A DNA stretch of 64,000 nt. Source: Mantamonas sphyraenae STR306 (lineage: Eukaryota > Protista > CRuMs). Both the position numbers and the translations under genes were made by a program. The notes below the pieces were generated by a model. The model saw only the letters and a program-made list of their open reading frames with translations. It ran no database searches and was not told where the DNA came from. Where the stretch lies: assembly GCA_026936335.1 (NCBI GenBank), contig JAPMXV010000013.1, positions 1 to 64,000 on the forward strand. The letters are read 5' to 3'. Positions 42,907 through 53,333 of the stretch are shown piece by piece; within the stretch, counting starts at the first letter, position 1, and every line of letters starts with the position of its first letter.

Positions 42907-45900
42907 TCACGTCACCACTCGCATGATGCTCACAATAGGCTTCTCGATCAGCTGCTTGGCCGGTCCAAACGCACTCACGACAGCAAAGATCATACTGAGG
43001 ACGACGACAAGTCCCATGAGCTCCCAGGGAAACTCAAAGGCAATGGGCAGCTGAGTAAACAGCTGACGCTGCAGCGTCATGGTCCAGCCCACCAGAGTCC
43101 CGATCACCATGCCCAACAAGGAGGAGGAAAACACAAGCACGTATGCCTCGTAGATGTACAGTCGCACAATCCACCACTTGCCCACGCCCAAAGCACGCAT
43201 GACCCCGATCTCCTTGCTTTGCTCAAAGATGTTGGTGTACATCGATGCCATGAGGGAGAAGAAGCACACCGTCATGGCCACCACCGTTGTGAACCCAAAG
43301 AATGCGTTCAGAATCAGCCGTGCTGTTTCCAACGGACGCACACTTTCGCGATAATCCCACAGCCTCACAAAGCCCTTGACAGTGACGCCCTTGAGGTTGC
43401 TGATCAGAGCGTCCCTCTGTGCATCGCCCAGGCTTGGGTCGATCTGCACATACAGTAGCCGAAGCGGCACAGAGTCCATCGAATCCAGCAGGCCTTTGGA
43501 AAGGCGAAACCAGGTCGGGATGCTCACCAGCACATCCTGGCGCGCTCGCGAAGGAAACGCAGAGAAGCGATGCGCAGGCGCAGCGTCCAGAAATGCGTCT
43601 GCGTGCACGCGTGTGTAGTTGATGACAGGCAGCAGCGGAGACTGCTGGGTCAGCTGCGAGCGCAACAGCAGGTGTGAATTCATGCTCAGGCCCAGCCGCT
43701 CCTTGTACAGCGTGCCAATCATGCCTCCCGACGATCCGTTCACTGTGTACAATTGCTCCTCGATGTCAAATTTGCTGCTTGTGTCCTCCTCGTTGACCAC
43801 CAGGAAGCCCGGGATGGTCACGTTGAACATATGCGGCGAGATGCCGTAGTACGTGGCCACATCCGAGTATGACTTGCCCAGGTTTGTGTTTTGTGTCGTG
43901 TCCATGCTTGGTAGCGAGCTGAGCGGCCAGGTTTCCCACGCCCAGCCCTTGACGTTCTTGTCGGCCTTGAGCACCTCTTCGTACAATGTGGGTGTCGGCA
44001 GCGTGTTGGGCAGGCCTTGGGCATCCCTACCGCGTGCCTCCACGCGCAAGTACACGCCTCGGCTTTGTTGGCGGTCGTATGTGATGCTGGTGATGCTCGT
44101 GTTGAACGCCACGGCAATGAAGATAATGAAGCCCAGTGCGAGCGCGTACATGATTGTGGTCTTGCGGTTGCGCGAGCGGTGTGCAATCAAGTTCTTGACC
44201 ACCACGCTCTGCACGGCCGGCGCCTCCCAAAAGAAGAAGATGCGCGTGACGAGGCGCTCCAGCAGATGCTGCAGGTTCAACGACAGCATGACGAGACCCA
44301 GCAGCATGCCCAGGATGAGCACAAAGAAGATGTTGAGCAGAAGGCCCAGGTCGAAGCTCAACAGCGCCAGAGGGAACATGTAGTAGATGAAGAAGCCAAA
44401 GGCAGAGAGGAGCAGGCCGATGCCAATCACGCTGAAATCCAGACGCGACGAGGCGCTGCGTTCGATGTTGTACTTGACGCCCGACGTTTTGGAACGCTTG
44501 ACGTCCAGGGCATCGTGGAGATTGAGCCCCAGGGCGTTGCGGATGGGCAGGATGGAGGCTGCGATGGGGATGAGCACGCCAAGCAGGGTTGCGTTGAGGA
44601 CGGCGCTGGCACTGAGCCAGGGCGACACTTCGACACCCGTGGCGGTGCGAAAGGCATCTGCAATTGCAAAAGCACCCGCTTGTGCGGCCACAAGACCCAG
44701 GGCGTATGCGGGCAGACTGTACGAAAAGGCCTGGACCATGAGGAGCTCGACGACACCGCGGCGAGTCATTCCCACCATGCGCATGACGCCCATTTCAAAG
44801 GTGCGTGTTTCGACGCTGATCATCAGCAGGGAGTAGATGAGGATGATGGAGAGGGCGGTGAGAATGGTGACGATAATGTTGAGCAGGAGGCCAAGAAAGA
44901 GGTTGAAGAACTGGGTGCCTGCCAGACCGGACAGCAGCGGCATGCTTGGGTTCAGCTGGTTGTAACCCAGCTGGTACAGAATGAGAGAGCCAAACTTGAC
45001 GAGTCTGCCCTGGATCACGTCAAAGTTGGGCTCCAGGTACTCCTCGAGACGGTTGGGCAGGTTGAAGTAGACATCCTGTGCAAACTCGGCGGTGCTGTGC
45101 TGCTTGAGGATGCGGTAAAAGTCTGGGTGGAACACTTGGTCGTTGACATACCCTGCCATCCATGGCAGCCACGAGTCAAAGTCGGCAATGATGGCATCGG
45201 TGGTGCTGGTGCCAAACTTGCCGTAGGGGAAGTCAAAGAGCTTGACCACCTTGAGGGGCACCCACACTGTGTCTGTGTGCAGCCGCAGCGCAGCAGTGGT
45301 CAGATTCACCTGTGGGCTGTACCCGGCCAGTTCAAACAAAGGACGGAAGCGTGCGTATCCGTTGACCTGCAGCAGGATGATGTCGCCCACCTGTACGCCT
45401 GCACCGCGTGCCACACGTTCGTGCATGTATGCTTCGCCCGTTTTCAGATTCGTGTTGTACGGCCAGCTGCGGCCAAACTTGATCTTTGCTTCGCGCTCCA
45501 GATCCATCAAGAACAGCGTGCCTTCCACAGGCGAAGCTCCCAGAGCACCCAGCTTCTCGGCCACGCAACTGCAAGTGAGAGGAGGCACAGGTGGAGTTGT
45601 AGGGTGGGTTGTGTGTGAGTGGAAACGGAAACGGGGAGGTGGGAATGAGGTTGGCTGGGCAAAACGCACTTTGCGGTGAACGAGTTTGGGGTCCTGGCAC
45701 ACGCATCTGAGGTTGCATCGCCATACATCCACGTCTGGTTGTATGGATCGACATTGAGGTTGGCAGGCAGCTTGTAGAAGGGCAGCTGGAACTCATGGCG
45801 TGGAGTGTGGAGCTGAAACTCTGGATTGTCTATGGCCGCGAGCTCGGTTGCCACACGTGTGTAGTTGACAAGCGTATTGCCGGTCCTGGAGGCACCATGT

Positions 45901-46474
45901 GGAGTGTGCACAATGGCGTGAGTGGACATGTGTGGGCAATGGGCAGTGGCCAAGGCGTGGGGCACTCACCATGTGCCGGCGCTGACTTTGAGGTCGTTTT
46001 CACCGGCGTCCGCTTCGGCCAGCGAAAGAAACACCACGGGCGCCTGGTACAGGGCAGTCACGGTCAGAGAGACGACGGCAACGACAATGAAACAGGACAT
46101 GGCGCCTGTAGGGAAGGATGGAGAAGAGGCACAGGCACACGTGTCAGTCCAGGGGCCACTTTCACACGGGGGAGGTTGGGAGCAGCCAAGCCGGAAAGGG
46201 GCCGATCGAGGCGGCACACAGGCAGGCACAAGGAGACAGGGTCGTCCCGTCACAACGCACCCAGGCAAAAGTTGAGCTTGCGTTGCATGATTTCGTTGAA
46301 AGTGTGTCTCAAGTACAGGGCCCATCGCTCCCGCCGAGCCTTGGGCAAGACGGGCTTGTCCTTGCCCGACGGCAGCGAGCTGATCGGCACGTGTTGGTGC
46401 TGCACATTGTGCTCCCGATGCACCGACTGCACACTTAGGTCACGCGACCGCTCGCTCTTTCCACTGTCACCCAT
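42907..46474 (-). CDS. FtsX/MacB-like ABC permease-family membrane protein (two permease modules), multi-exon
   Basis: Two permease motifs (ETRTFEMGVMRMVG, EQSKEIGVMRALG), many TM helices; 5' exons in ORFs 46250-46609, 45966-46325 and 45507-45965. Confidence 0.85.
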
Positions 46475-46676
46475 GGACCAAGAGAGAGAGGGATAGGACC
46501 GCGTTGCACCCACCCGCGATGACGAAGAAATCCGCCCATTGTACATCGATGATCCATCTATCCTTCCCTCTGCACTTGCCCACGTCCTCAAATGTCCTCC
46601 CGGTGCCACAGCATCTGCGCTACCAACTCAAGTTGATGTCCAGTCTCGAACCAACACGAATGGTGGCCATTTCCAG

Positions 46677-46983
46677 CCGGGTAGCGCTTACTCAGAACGT
46701 GAACACAAGAGAATTGCGGCCGCGTATATCAACAACCCTGCGATGACCATGGACGACGTCGCTGAGCAGATGCAGGCCGCACAGTCCTCGGTCAGCAAGT
46801 TTGTGAAGTTGAGCCGCACTGGGAATCTCGCACCCAAACATTGCGGTGGTGCACGCGTACCCCGCAAAATCACACCGCACCACGAACGTCGCGTTCAACA
46901 ATGGATATAACAAGATCCGCTGCTGAGTCTGGATCAGATTCGTGGCCTACTGCATGCAGAAGGCGTGGACGTGTCGCACAAGG
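46677..46983 (+). pseudogene. Tc1/IS630-type transposase N-terminal HTH module, interrupted by an in-frame TAA (46908-46910); no DDE domain
   Basis: GSAYSEREHKRIAAAY...DDVAEQMQAAQSSVSKFVK..RTGNLAPK..GG..PRKIT...WI*QDPLLSLDQIRGLLHAEGVDVS, followed by a GTGAG donor at 46984. Confidence 0.75.
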
Positions 46984-47121
46984 GTGAGCTGTACCTGGAA
47001 CGGTCGTCAGGGACACACACAATGAACACATAACCCTGACCCTCTGTTTTCGTTTCGCACATGCCGCACACCTCAAAAGGTGGAGGGCCCACCTGCCCAA
47101 CGGGAACCAACGAAATCACCC

Positions 47122-47955
47122 ATGTCCTCCAGCTGCTCAACGCTCGCTGAGCAGCCGGAGGAGGGGTTGCTGGACCCATCTGGGATCATTGCAACACGCT
47201 CAGCATACATCCTTGGATGTGGCAAGGAGTCTGGGTATGATTATGTGGATTTGATCCAACCACCTGACGACTTGACGCTCGCGAAGACTCCGAAGTGGAA
47301 TGGCAATCCGAAGTCATCCTTGCGCGACTACGTGCTCAAGTTCAACAAGGCAGAGGTTGCGCCAGCCATCCCCAGAAGCACGAAGGGTCGCAGGGACGCC
47401 ATCAAGCGGCAGATGGTCGAGATCATGACGAGCTTCAGGGAGAGCAGGCCAACGCAGCAGCGGATCAGAGTCGATCTAGGATTCGCAGGTGAGTTTTGTG
47501 GAGGTGTGAGGACTCTATTTGCTTGCTCACACCGTCAAAACATTAGTGAACGTCAATGTGACACGTGCAACCGGGTGCACACGGACGTCATGGGAGAAAG
47601 AGGGCCGCCAAGAGGCGCAGCGGATTATCAAACGCACCGTGGAATCTCTCCTCACGCTCTGCTCGGACGTCAAAATCAAAGGCGCCTTTGCCACCGAGGG
47701 CGTCCTAGGCTCCACAGACATTCTGCACAACACCAAGCCCTATGTGAAACGTGATCGACACATGTTTGGCCTCTTGTCGAGCATGATGCGGCACCTGGAG
47801 GCTGGAGAGGATGAGTTTGTGAGTTACCGTTACAATTGCGCGGCACGTGTCAACGAGAATGACGTTACTTTTGCGCGCCAAGTTGACAGGTGTCAGAAGG
47901 GCCAACCGTTACTTTTGCGCGCGACGATGCTGACACAGATCGCGCGGCGCACACA

Positions 47956-48007
<52 letters not shown>

Positions 48008-51000
48008 CATGCCACCAGCATGCTGGGGGCGAGTACTACAACGAAGTGGTCATACCATGCGTCCGAGATGCCGTCGGCACCGAGGGCGTTCTGATCATCG
48101 ATGAACACGATTGTGGCGGCGGAGAAGCCGAGCATCTGCTGCAAGATTGCGCCGGCAAGGGCACTGTGATCGTCGTGTCCAGCGACATTGACGTTCTCAC
48201 TTTGTTTCTCGACGTTCCCGAAGTCGTGGTGCTGGTGTCTCCAGTCAATGGCCAGGTCCTGCAGATGGCACAGGCACAGCGCAAGCTCATCTCGGCCTTT
48301 GCCATCTGCACCTATCTGGATGACCGCGATCGTGGTCAGCTCAAAGCCAAGGTCGCCAAGCTGCGCAAGGGTCTCTGGGCGTACGTGGACTCGGTGATGT
48401 ACGCGGAGGATTTTGATGCGACGGCATTCACCACAACCTACTGGTCGCTGGACATCGTTAAATCGCTGAGCACAGACGAGAAGAAGAAGGAGCAAGCTTT
48501 GCTGATGGAGGGTGCCACCTACCATGGGCATAAGGAGCTGCTGCAAGCCCTCCAGCAGTCGCAGCCGCAGGAGGACCCTCAGCAGTCGCAGCCGCAGGAG
48601 GACCCTCAGCAGGACCAGCCAATGCAGCTGACGGTGCATCAAGTCTACCATGAGTTGAGGCATGCCGGGCCCCTGGGACCGATGGCAGTCCGCTGTTGCA
48701 TGCAGCTCTTGGTTGAGCGCAAGCAATTTGGGATCACGGAGGTACTCGAGCGTCTGAAGCAGGCATCTGTGGAGCGGTACATGGTTCGACAACTGGAACG
48801 TGCAACACTGGTGTTCCGTGCTCACGACGGGGGGCTTGGTGAACTGGTGAGGGCTGTGGTTTCGCAAGACAAACCGTTTTCTGGATTCGCCCACCTGGGC
48901 GACGTGCGTGCGCCGTTGGTTCGCTTTTTCTTAGCCGAGCTGGCCATCAAGGTACCCTCGTTTCTTCCTGCCCACGGACACAACATCCTGGCAACGCCTG
49001 ACGACATGCGTCTGCGCCTCAAGCAGTGGGAAGACGCAGTGGAGGGGTTCCACCCGGATGTGGCAACCCTGCAACGCCGTGTCGACATCAGCATCATTGA
49101 CGACTGTCCCAACTTTGTCAACGTAACATTCAAGGGACCGCACACGCGGCAGACAGCGTTTATCGAAGCGTTGTTTCTGCAGTTCGTCTCCGAGTACTTT
49201 CAGCAGCCAAACGGGATCGCACTGCCCCGGTATGAGCTGCCCGAACACGCCAACCTGCGCAGGGGCAGCTTCACGGAGTGGATGGGCGACACGACCGAGG
49301 AGGAATTGCGCATCTCGCTGGAGCTACTCGCTGGCACACCGAAGCTGCTGGGCAAGCTTGGCCAGGGCAAGTCAGGCAACGACCTGAGCAGCCTGCTGGT
49401 ACAACGTACCTTCAAGCTGGAACGGCTTCGGCCGAGCAACGCAGCATCGCGGGCTGCGTTTGCACTGGAAGGGCTGTGGCGAGGCGTTGCGCTGGCCAGG
49501 GCGATGGTCATGGACGCGTTCTTTCGGCTTGTTTCGTCCGCCACAGATGGACGCATGTGGATTCGTACACAAGAAGCGAAGCAAGAAGAGTGTGGCGACG
49601 ATGCAGCAGAGCCGAAAAAGGCAGAGCCGAAAAAGGCAGAGCCGAAAAAGGCAGAGCCGAAAAAGGCAGAACCGAATGTGCTCGTGTGCGACAAAGTGAT
49701 GCAGAAGCTGCTGAAGCTCATTGGGATCCATGTGTACAACGCTGTGGTTGACAAGCGGGCCAGTGTGGGCATGGTGGTCGAACAAGGAGGTCTGGCGGCG
49801 CCCTGGGGGTCATGCCAGCGATTCTCCAAGCTGTGCAAGATCGGGGCCGTGCAGGATGTTCCGATCGAGGTGTTGGTGCACTCGTGCGAACCAGGGTCGG
49901 AAGCGCTGGTCGAGGTTGACCTGTGCCCGCTACACGAGTGTGGCGAGGTCGTTGCGGCCGCAGCGGCCCACGTTGCAGTCTCCACAGTCGAGTCGCTGCG
50001 TCAAAAGGTCCACGGGATGATTCGGTCGACCGTGAGCAACTTTAGGCGAAGGAGCAAGGCTGGAAGGGTGGTCGGCAGGATCGCAGCGCTGAACTGCAGC
50101 AAGGCCGTTTTCGTCGCGGCGTGTGCGCAGGTGCTGGACGTCGAGCGACCGATCATGTGGTCCGTGGTGAACAAGTTGCAGCTGGCAGTGAAGTGGCCGA
50201 GGGGCAACAAGGAGGTCGACTTTGACCAGGCAGTGCAACAGGTCGCCGGCGCGAGGGGGTTTGCAACGATTACCAAGGCGCTGGGCGTGAAACAAGGAGC
50301 TGACGAGTCAACTGCTGTGAGAGATCTGGCAGAGGATGTGAACAACTGGGTGCAAGAACACACGAGCGCCAAGGGTGAGGTGCCCTTTCAGTTTCCCAGC
50401 GGTGTGTCGCTGCAGAGTGAGTACCAGGTCAGCACCACAGACCTGTGCTTTGGCGCACGGGCAGCTGTACAAGTGCTTGAACGAGTACCCGGTGCTGACG
50501 CCACCAACGCCATCAAGCTTCTGAACAAGTTCACAAGCAAAGATCGTGTGTACGAAACACAGGAATCGCTGCTAAAGAGCGGGGACTCCAGCGCATGGCC
50601 GAAGTACGTGCAGGATCTCGTCGCAACTGGCGAGAAGCGTTTCGGGGATGGCTCTGAAATCGTTGACGCGCAGTTGCAACGCAAGAGGCGGTGTGCACTA
50701 CCGCTCTTGTTGTACGTCATGTTTCCACGGCTTTCAACCAGCACAAAGACGCTGATCGGGCAGGCGAGTGGCATGACAGTGAGCAAGACATGGGTGAAGG
50801 GGAGGAGGACGCGGCAGCGCACAGCCGTCGAACTGTACAACGGTCCTCGGGGGGGCAAGTACATGGAGGTGGAGAAAGTATTCACTCAGGAACATCGTGA
50901 AGTGGACGATTTTCCTGCGTTGAAGGCACAGGGCGAGAAGGCGTCGGCAGTGCAACTTGCACAGCGCCTGTTGGTGGCATGGAGCGTGTTTGGGGTCCCA

Positions 51001-51819
51001 GAGCAGTCTGACGACAGGCTGTCCTATCTCAAGCGCATGGTCTCCGTCCCACAGCAGGCTGTGGCGAAAGGCAATCTGCGTGGCTTCCTGCCAAGCGCGA
51101 ATCCCCGAGCTGCGATGGCAGCTCTGCGACATGCAGGACCCATCATCAACGGAGACCCAGGTGCATACAAAGACAACTTGCAGGTGGTGAGACTGTTGGA
51201 CCAGGGTGAGCTTGTGATCGAGCGTGGCATGGTGAGGTACGCACTGGTGGAGCACATTCCCACGACCCCTCACCACACGCAGCGGCAAAAGTCGCACGCA
51301 GACAGCGCCAGTGGGAAAGGCACACGCCCTGTAGCTCGAGAGCGACGCAACCAGGAGACGAGACGCATTGTGCAGCGGAGTGGAGCGCAGCTGTGTTTGG
51401 ACGGAAGGAGGACATGGGGCAGCAAAGGACAGACGGCATCGCAATCGGTGATGGGCATGCACATGGTGCATGTGGCAAGTGACGAGTATGGCCAGTCACA
51501 ACGGTGCATCTATGGCGGGCATCAACAGCAGTTTGTGCCGTCCATGGGCAGTGTGGCATGGAAGGGCAGGTGGAAAGTTTGCACCGAGTGCCGGTTCCAC
51601 CTCGCCAACACGACATCGGACCGGACGCTGTGGTCTGCGCTTGGGTACATGATTCAGGATCAGAGAGGTGCAGTGGTGCATCGGGACCGGACCGGAATGC
51701 TGAACCAGCTGCACTGCACCCTGAGCGTTGCGATTTGCGGCAAGCTGGCGATGTGGTTTGATCGAGAGTGCAAATGGGATGGCTGGGAGGAGGAGTGGGA
51801 AACGTGGGCTTTTGGATAG
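47122..51819 (+). CDS. Large Fanzor (eukaryotic TnpB-like RuvC nuclease) with an N-terminal FEN/XPG-like PIN domain; predicted exons 47122-47488, 47547-47818 and 48007-51819 (possible extra in-frame intron 51232-51282)
   Basis: RuvC-I INGDPG (D 51154), RuvC-II DEYGQSQRC (E 51484), CTEC Zn ligands, RuvC-III HRDRTGMLN (D 51685); PIN-like RVDLG, FATEG, GEAEH and VVSSDIDVL; splice phases match. Confidence 0.82.
47828..47921 (+). repeat. Three 15-nt direct repeats CGTTACWWTTGCGCG with unique 20- and 29-nt spacers (intronic)
   Basis: Copies at 47828-47842, 47863-47877 and 47907-47921. Confidence 0.85.
47950..48005. repeat. (CA)n microsatellite at an intron 3' end
   Basis: Near-perfect AC run ending in the CAG acceptor at 48006. 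Confidence 0.95.
49606..49674 (+). repeat. Coding minisatellite (GCAGAGCCGAAAAAG)x4+ encoding AEPKK repeats
   Basis: Perfect 15-nt tandem units in the Fanzor ORF; a 27-nt duplication (QQSQPQEDP) also occurs at 48553-48606. Confidence 0.95.
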
Positions 51820-52000
51820 GCAACATGGTGGCATTACTGAGTGCGCACACTATCCATTTGGCTAGCGCCAGCTCGATTTCACAGAGATCGCAGTTGGTTG
51901 AAACCGAATGTAGGACCGTGCAGAGTCGAGGGATTGCTGGTGGAGCTGCCGCGGCACGTTTTCATTTTCGTCTCCTCCCAAACACTGGGAGCAGAGCGTG
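51820..52000 (+). ncRNA. Candidate omegaRNA (Fanzor guide-RNA scaffold)
   Basis: Directly 3' of the Fanzor stop; hairpins CCAGCT-CGATTTC/GAGATCG-C-AGTTGG (51868-51897), alternative CGCCAGCTCGA/TCGAG..GCTGGTG (51866-51942), CTCCCA/TGGGAG (51975-51991). Confidence 0.55.
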
Positions 52001-52041: not shown

Positions 52042-53333
52042 TCAATACAGCGACGTCTTGCGCATGATGCGCAGGAACTCGTCCTCGCTGATCTCTCCGT
52101 CGCCGTCGCGGTCGGCCTCGTCGATCATCTCCTGCAGCTCCTCGTCGGTCAGGTTCTCACCGAGCTCCTTGGACACCCTGTGTGATGGAGATGCCGCAAC
52201 GAAAAACACACACGCGCACGAGTTAGCACACACTCACAGACACCACAGAGACACAAAAGCAAACCGCAACTCAAAACTCACCTCTTCAGGTTGCGGAAGG
52301 AGATCTTGCCCGTGTTGTCGTCGTCAAACAGACGGAAGGCCTTGAGGATTTCCTCACGCGAGTCCTTCTCGCTCATCTTGGAGGTCATCATCTCCAGAAA
52401 CTCGGAAAAGTCGATGGTTCCGTTGCCGTCCTTGTCGATGTCGGAAATCATCTTCTTGATCTCCTCCTTCTTCGGCTCAAAGCCCAGGGCGCGCATGGCC
52501 ACCTTCAGCTCCTTGGCGTCGATGGTGCCTGTACACACACGCGTGTGGTTGGTGTCACATCAACATGCCCTTTTGTGTCAGCGTGGCCACGTGCAGGCGC
52601 TCAAGAAGTGTGATGCCACAAGAGGGTCCATGTGGCGTACCCTTGCAAGGTACGCCCGGCGCCACGTGGGCCCTGTACACGCGCAGGTACAACCTCGCTG
52701 TCGCATAAAGGGGAGCTCATGCATGCTGCGCACACGTTGCATGCATGTGTCTTTCCGTTACATCCGTGTTCTGGTGTACAGAGGCGGAGAAACGCAGACA
52801 AATTGCGCGCGCGCCACATTGCCCGCAGTTGACAAAATGGCCTCGTGCACGCTCAGCACATGCACTCAGTGTGGCACAGTGTGTCCATGCATGCAAACGT
52901 GGCTCTGTGTGACATGGCTTGCTCGCATGGGCTACCGTTGTGCCTGGATGCCTCTTGAGGCGTGTGCCAACGCCTGTGGCTGGCGGCAAAAAAGCGCTCG
53001 TCTCAACGGTTGGCCCGTTGACCAAAAGGCGCAAAAACTCACCCGATCCGTCGGTATCGAACAGCTCAAACGCCTCACGAATCTCCGAGCGTTGCTCCTC
53101 GGTCAGATCCGGCTTGTTCTTGCTCTTGCCTCCACGCGTGGAAGACCCCAGGCCGCTGCGCTTGAAACCCGACTGCGGATGGAAAAACGCGCGCCACCCT
53201 TGTGTCAGCCTCGTTGGTTTTCTGGCCACTGCTCCTCCTCGACACCCTCACTGCACCGACCACACACATCATCGTGTGCACCCTATCCATTCACTCATCC
53301 GTGCAGCCCCGCTGTTTTCCCGACACCTACCAT
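52042..53333 (-). CDS. CETN: Centrin (caltractin); exons 53333-53331 (ATG only), 53172-53043, 52528-52282 and 52177-52042
   Basis: [44 protein letters not shown]...MRKTSLY; four EF-hands; all splice phases consistent. Confidence 0.97.

Follow-up and report, generated by a model that had tools for sequence, protein, structure and literature searches.

We describe here a gene that is predicted to join two nucleases in one polypeptide, a FEN/XPG/Xrn1-type PIN domain at its N-terminus and a divergent Fanzor-type RuvC domain with a zinc finger at its C-terminus. The gene lies at 47122–51819 on the forward strand of a 64,000-nucleotide (nt) stretch of Mantamonas sphyraenae STR306 DNA (contig JAPMXV010000013.1, positions 1 to 64,000; hereafter the window), and it belongs to a family of at least 53 loci in this genome, of which eight of ~50 siblings (L013, L015 and L026–L031) were read in sequence and compared with the copy in the window (hereafter the locus). 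TnpB and Fanzor proteins are omegaRNA-guided nucleases, Fanzors being related to CRISPR-Cas12, and characterised Fanzors have one nuclease each.

The RuvC and PIN halves of a predicted single gene

The RuvC identity of the C-terminus is a solid prediction. The catalytic triad sits where the sequence-only reading that preceded this analysis had placed it, at D 51154 (in a DPG), E 51484 and D 51685, and is invariant across nine copies; a profile built from the eight siblings, with the locus protein left out, matches the locus frame at E 1e-12, the runner-up of the 1,023 window pieces reaching E 2.8. ESM Atlas features of the C-terminus point to Cas12f1-like TNB clusters at 0.95, the Fanzor-like tails of the siblings match PF07282 weakly, and the best match of the sibling profile in the PDB, also weak, is the mimivirus Fanzor2. 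The catalytic Glu stands 7 codons ahead of the first zinc-finger Cys, the alternative Glu placement that had rightly been noted as typical of Fanzors. DPG in RuvC-I with a Glu beside the zinc finger (Yoon 2023, PMC10711439) and the alternative catalytic Glu adjoining the zinc finger (Jiang 2023, PMC10530073) are given as Fanzor signatures. The locus copy fails the strict 2013 Fanzor motif, D-X(125,275)-[TS][TS]-XX-C4-X(5,50)-RD, in its D-to-E distance of 110 amino acids (aa), in a Q-S where the motif has T-S, and in a Gly for Cys, while siblings L015, L028, L030 and L031 retain the spacing, the T-S and all four Cys. About 145 aa before the DPG, the siblings carry T-G-T/S and the locus copy S-G, as against the TDG of the Fanzor1 WED motif. 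Because the 2023 signatures are present but the strict 2013 motif is unmatched, the locus copy is, on its sequence, a divergent Fanzor homologue and not a textbook member.

The assignment of the N-terminus to a FEN/XPG/Xrn1-type PIN domain is supported by motifs in the locus and by the predicted fold of a sibling. Seven acidic sites, counted as in FEN1, stand in order in the sibling alignment: D 47473, E 47696, E 48124 and E 48130 (E-A-E), D 48184 and D 48190 (D-I-D), and D 48322; all but the last had been picked out beforehand, and they are found in register with the siblings, which have six such sites and a Ser at one. Motif order and spacing match those of the eight siblings, the domain is split by the same introns, and the head of exon 3 aligns in register with the sibling PIN. 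The Asp of the siblings' helix-3-turn-helix (H3TH), there part of an R-G-D, aligns to D 48322, the locus keeping just the Asp; the SGND at 49372, formerly suggested as the H3TH, was abandoned, being 350 codons too distant and unconserved in the siblings.

Searches and folding of the locus protein were made exon by exon. The exon-3 head is the best of the window pieces against the sibling profile, yet at E 0.24 it is not significant alone, nor is exon 2 by itself (E 3.1, leave-one-out). Atlas feature leads for the exon-3 head are XRN_N and 5_3_exonuc_N (0.84–0.89), whereas comparing the exon sequences with Pfam, NCBIfam, PHROGs and the PDB gave no significant match, and the PIN domain is named by no sequence library. 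The best PDB match of the PIN part of the sibling profile is a mycobacterial flap endonuclease, exactly at the A-D...D-x-D motif (E 0.45). For sibling L013, whose N-terminus is uninterrupted in the genomic frame, a model was obtained with a predicted local distance difference test score (pLDDT) of 52 and a predicted template modelling score (pTM) of 0.47. Foldseek ranks T5 D15, FenA, T4 RNase H and Exo1 highest for it, with a best E of 0.007 and a probability of 0.97; in VIA, T5 exonuclease and Exo1 come out on top, with Z 7.0 over ~200 residues, ahead of FenA, Pol I, XRN1, XPG, FEN1 and GEN1; and the Atlas fold search returns the 5_3_exonuc and XRN_N families (TM 0.42–0.49). The matches cover residues 1–351, with 5′ nucleases in the top rows. 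We read the L013 fold as that of a 5′ nuclease because the three fold searches agree, coverage is full-length and the motifs match, although each score is modest.

The two halves are predicted to be joined in a gene of three exons and 1,483 codons from ATG 47122, according to splicing arithmetic on the sequence, which agrees with the ~1470–1480 aa and the two introns proposed earlier. Exon 3 lies in a frame at 47887–51816 (+) that is free of stops for 1,310 codons, a length with a chance of ~5e-18 at such composition. The parts of the gene are as follows:

47122..47488 (+): exon 1; an extension at the N-terminus and the first PIN strand, which holds Asp 47473; D-x-G-x-x donor context as in the eight siblings.
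47489..47546 (+): intron 1; GT-AG, 58 nt, phase 1; same position in 9/9 copies.
47547..47818 (+): exon 2; long helix, Glu 47696 (second PIN acidic site; Asp in siblings) and a gateway-like K-R-x-x-H.
47819..48006 (+): intron 2; GT-AG, 188 nt, phase 0, with a CA repeat; matched in the siblings by a phase-0 intron at the equivalent place.
48007..48500 (+): head of exon 3; latter half of the PIN domain, with acidic sites at 48124 and 48130 (both Glu) and at 48184, 48190 and 48322 (all Asp), plus an H3TH-like helical part.
48501..51099 (+): middle region; ~870 aa with no family match, two coding minisatellites; presumed REC/WED plus insertions.
51100..51819 (+): Fanzor-type RuvC/zinc-finger region; D 51154 (DPG), E 51484, D 51685, C-x-x-G ... 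C-x-x-C; stop TAG at 51817–51819.
46984..47079 (+): candidate extra 5′ intron, read from sequence; GTGAGC donor, CTGAC branch-like motif, AAG acceptor.

The introns are phase-compatible, and an alternative acceptor of intron 2 at 48018 is also in frame. In 9/9 copies examined, the intron-1 donor is a GTRAG (background frequency 0.0009 per site) one nt past the D-x-G-x-x of the first PIN strand. The second acidic site falls at exon 2 codon 51 in the locus copy and at codon 50–56 in the siblings; intron 2 starts 41 codons past it in the former and 34–37 in the latter, and in both it ends ~9–13 codons before a conserved Tyr. In L013, both introns are free of stops, which places PIN and RuvC within one genomic frame of 2,087 codons. 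The eight siblings keep both intron positions, which supports the splice model of the locus gene and ties exons 1–3 together; we infer from this that a single spliced mRNA encodes the PIN–RuvC fusion.

That the N-terminal acidic motifs arose by chance, the RuvC domain alone being real, would fit the missing Pfam, NCBIfam and PDB matches and the two leave-one-out values; it is hardly credible given that order, spacing and two intron positions match those of eight siblings and that the L013 PIN folds as a 5′ nuclease. The shared intron positions and motif context are what make this reading so improbable, and we proceed with the fusion of two nucleases.

Several smaller observations concern the gene model. 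The candidate intron at 46984–47079 may lengthen the N-terminus by 24 codons, from ATG 46954, and it does not connect the frame of an upstream helix-turn-helix (HTH) remnant with the gene. This remnant was rejected as a coding first exon: TAA 46908 comes before the sole strong donor, and the frame ends at 47151 once spliced. A non-standard genetic code was likewise set aside, as a centrin-like neighbour and the siblings end in TGA and the frames are clean. Intron 2 holds three imperfect 23-nt repeats (window 47828–47929); the coding minisatellites of 27 nt and 15 nt lie at 48536–48600 and 49606–49680, the siblings having minisatellites of their own elsewhere. Near 50600–50800, the middle region has weak similarity to the siblings.

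A family of mobile siblings and a stranded copy

Paralogous copies, proposed as a check by the sequence-only reading, which had missed the family, were sought in the whole assembly of M. sphyraenae, a deep-branching unicellular eukaryote (25,061,354 bases, 78 contigs, ~59% GC; published as a CRuMs genome of 25.06 Mb, 78 contigs and GC 59.19, PMC10492846). The C-terminus of the locus protein by itself finds paralogues there. A nine-copy profile yields the count of at least 53 loci, and at 48 of these the match falls in an open frame of 1,175–2,252 codons; the count is a lower bound, and nine of the loci are in the profile itself. A PIN profile matches 18 loci, every one upstream of the RuvC match on the same strand, and in 16/18 (the locus and 15 others) both halves share an open frame. 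At G000:C68:191902-196866 and C4:296734-301285, the PIN and RuvC matches are in separate frames, and these are probably broken copies. About 30 giant RuvC frames (1,500–2,050 codons) have no PIN-profile match and may hold a diverged PIN or other domains. L013 (G000:C43:67500-69500) has a 400-aa beta-rich insertion in its middle, with the appearance of OB/S1-type strand repeats and no Pfam match.

The sequences of the siblings mark them as young copies of IS630/Tc1-like transposons, with purifying selection acting on them. Pairs are 96–97% identical across 7.2–8.4 kb with sharp ends; at the right end, 112–251 nt beyond the stop, they share a GCGCGCTG motif, the left ends are imperfect inverted versions, and there is no constant TA duplication. 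L027, L030 and L031 have an intact IS630/Tc1-like transposase upstream (HTH and DDE; DDE_3 E 1e-25), and a match to such a transposase lies upstream on the same strand at 16 giant-RuvC loci. The ratio of nonsynonymous to synonymous substitution rates among siblings is 0.14 for RuvC, ~0.1–0.4 for the PIN part and 0.24–0.4 for exon 3. Their 3′ regions contain strongly folding stretches in 3/4 families (z −3.1 to −6.8), as would be expected of an omegaRNA.

Flank duplications differ among siblings: 8 nt at L015, 14 at L028, 13 at L029, 10 at L030, and none at L013, L026, L027 and L031. They may reflect insertion at staggered, guided cuts, and they resemble the variable target-site duplications (TSDs) of the CRe-1,2,3 Fanzor elements, as described in PMC3627910, and not the fixed TA of Tc1/mariner. 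In a comparison of the transposases of L030 (L030:362-1384), L031, L027, L029 and G000:C2:226603-227625, those of the L030/L031 and L027/L029 families are 96–99% identical, their Fanzors being only about one-third alike; from these sequences, transposase and Fanzor modules seem to have been swapped between families. Five IS630/Tc1-like transposases (45% to L030) have no giant-RuvC match nearby (G000:C11:189603, C43:172587, C46:163137, C59:146190 and C29:71036) and are either Fanzor-free elements or neighbours of Fanzors that the profile missed.

The locus gene, in our reading of its sequence, descends from this transposon cargo, which has radiated in M. sphyraenae, and is apparently immobilised. 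Around it lie the following features:

46632..46983 (+): IS630/Tc1-like transposase remnant; reduced to the paired-like HTH, with an in-frame ATG missing where the start is expected, TAA 46908 in frame, and no DDE.
46503..46630 (+): upstream stretch; one other copy, 77% identical, at C63:4177-4290; a possible left-end relic.
51812..51900 (+): hairpin pair directly 3′ of the stop, a candidate omegaRNA scaffold; without the siblings' end motif.
52042..52526 (−): centrin-like EF-hand host gene; convergent, ~220 nt between both stops, ends in TGA.

The remnant, which stands in place of an intact HTH and DDE transposase and is broken by a stop, matches PAX at E 0.0026 and the intact transposase L030:362-1384 at 33% over 80 aa (E 3e-6). 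The siblings' end motif was not found at the locus (score ≤4, as against 11–23 in siblings), nor was a terminal inverted repeat, a flank duplication or a TA duplication found around it. The 3′ hairpins have z −2.7 for 89 nt chosen post hoc and z −1.7 for 211 nt, with no Rfam match. The locus copy is single in the genome and 21–23% identical to siblings over the C-terminal 450 aa; in a tree, it forms a long branch outside the sampled siblings (placement unsure), the most divergent of the eight read and itself. The GC content at third codon positions is 0.69–0.71 in each of exons 1–3, host-like (host genes 0.72–0.79), and 0.59 in the HTH remnant. Further upstream, at 42910–46100 (−), a divergent host gene encoding FtsX-like permease domains (E 1e-29) looks atypical for a eukaryote and is probably ordinary.

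These features bear on whether the locus is a domesticated host gene, a 5′ nuclease aimed by RNA or by sibling guides in trans, for example in policing or repairing insertions. Its single copy on a long branch outside the sampled siblings, dead transposase remnant, absent end motif, host-like codon use, intact 1,310-codon frame and complete series of seven FEN-type acidic sites (six and a Ser in the siblings) all argue for such a history. We nevertheless regard domestication as unlikely: the adjacent remnant is still recognisable, which would fit an immobilisation of no great age, a copy number of just 1–3 is common among sibling families, and the comparison covers eight of the siblings in M. 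sphyraenae alone.

Proposed function and its rivals

We lean, with moderate confidence, towards a role in which a guided RuvC cut is followed by trimming of the ends by the tethered 5′ nuclease, favouring gene conversion (homing). Guided cutting and homing are proposed for the siblings because characterised TnpB and Fanzor proteins do so, and the resection step because the N-terminal fold resembles 5′ nucleases. OMEGA systems restore excised transposons via cutting of the empty site (PMC13565253). The steps would be as follows:

(i) In the mobile siblings, an omegaRNA from the right end of the element would direct RuvC to the site left empty by excision.

(ii) The sibling RuvC would cut this empty site.

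(iii) The tethered 5′ nuclease would then trim the 5′ ends or flaps.

(iv) The break would be repaired by gene conversion from the chromatid or homologue that bears the element (restorative homing).

(v) The locus copy, without transposase and recognisable ends, would be kept intact by homing minus transposition or by host selection.

Several points weigh against this cut-and-trim role. The zinc finger of the locus is degenerate: among the zinc ligands claimed by the sequence-only reading, the C-x-x-C pair is present, but the first pair reads C-x-x-G, its second Cys being replaced by Gly. RuvC-I and the Glu are closer together than the 126–129 aa found in siblings. Of the structural matches expected for both ends of the protein, the FEN-like one was obtained for the L013 N-terminus, and the AlphaFold model of the RuvC part, at pLDDT 36, was too low to be used. 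The PIN fold scores (Z 7.0, Foldseek E 0.007, pLDDT 52) are modest and come from L013, not the locus protein; splicing and the single mRNA are read from the DNA; neither an omegaRNA boundary nor a guide target could be found for the locus, a single copy; and PIN-fold enzymes also act on RNA.

This last point leads to a role in which the PIN domain would trim the omegaRNA from the mRNA 3′ end or turn over the element transcript, with no processing of DNA ends. The matches include XRN1/Rat1 and NYN folds, and, as established for TnpB and Fanzor, the omegaRNA needs release from the end of the spliced mRNA. TnpB-family RuvC can, however, process its own RNA, and DNA 5′ nucleases rank highest among the fold matches and cover the H3TH-like helical part, so that we hold an RNA role to be improbable.

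The RuvC changes, in turn, are what a recently disabled copy would display, its protein drifting and its guided nuclease dead though the frame is open: a zinc ligand is lost, the RuvC insert is shortened, Q-S replaces T-S, the adjacent transposase is broken and the coding minisatellites are expanding. We give this account very little weight, as the triad, the PIN acidic sites and both introns are retained at ~22% identity to siblings, the 1,483 codons run without stop or frameshift, and L013 and L027 likewise alter the first zinc pair. Guided cutting with tethered 5′ trimming is the reading that we carry forward.

Known systems and significance

The locus shares with Fanzor1 (SpuFz1, GtFz1) a C-terminal RuvC with DPG, the alternative Glu and introns, and the siblings share carriage by eukaryotic DNA transposons and a conserved structured 3′ end; the family differs in its length of ~1,480–2,200 aa and its extra N-terminal 5′ nuclease, and the locus in failing the strict 2013 motif and in being without transposon ends (Saito 2023, PMC10432273; Jiang 2023, PMC10530073; and Yoon 2023, PMC10711439). 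As in PGv-1 and PUl-1 (Mariner/Tc1 with Fanzor1), a transposase gene and then a Fanzor lie in one element in the siblings. PGv-1 (Bao and Jurka 2013, PMC3627910) carries its second nuclease as a separate GIY-YIG protein, and the TSDs of those elements are TA; here a PIN domain fused to the Fanzor takes that place, and flank duplications of the siblings are 8–14 nt or none. With FEN-like 5′ nucleases (T5 D15, Exo1, FEN1, XPG, GEN1, XRN1), the family has in common the predicted fold of the sibling N-terminus (with modest scores), the order and spacing of the seven sites and a basic gateway-like motif; it differs in being fused to a Fanzor and, at 10–16% identity, in lying below Pfam detection, and in the locus copy site 2 is occupied by Glu instead of Asp and the H3TH site lacks the Gly-x-Asp.

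A HMMER search of 1.84 billion representatives gave 23 weak matches, to the RuvC tail only and none close, and the contigs of three of these showed no PIN family. Scans of viral and metagenome contigs found no relative with the PIN–RuvC architecture; word-index protein searches found no relative either, and carry little weight since the method sees only 0.55–1.75x the query length. Fungal proteins (Mucoromycota, Mortierellomycota, chytrids) with PF00867/PF00752 and PF07282 may exist. No PIN–Fanzor fusion was found in the literature searched, including the available parts of the text and supplements of the main Fanzor papers. Fanzors often bear extra domains, according to Jiang 2023 (PMC10530073), where the individual list lies in a figure, and it is possible that the PIN–Fanzor architecture is already catalogued. 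To this family the locus adds, as far as its sequence tells, a stranded copy with the full set of sites that is the most divergent of those sampled.

That a fusion of FEN/Exo1 type has been maintained by purifying selection throughout a transposon radiation suggests a coupling between guided cutting and the processing of ends, and bears on the role of Fanzors for eukaryotic transposons under the homing model. Such proteins would be natural counterparts of the nuclease–exonuclease fusions engineered for genome editing, and M. sphyraenae, a culturable diploid with ~50 copies, makes homing directly testable. The locus is a candidate domestication event. We can only tentatively entertain, and think rather doubtful, that the family is an undescribed class of eukaryotic RNA-guided effector with a built-in 5′ resection nuclease and that the locus is its host-domesticated member with both active sites; if true, no natural cut-and-resect gene guided by RNA would have been described before in a eukaryotic host, and a single protein would both make the break and direct it into homology-directed repair.

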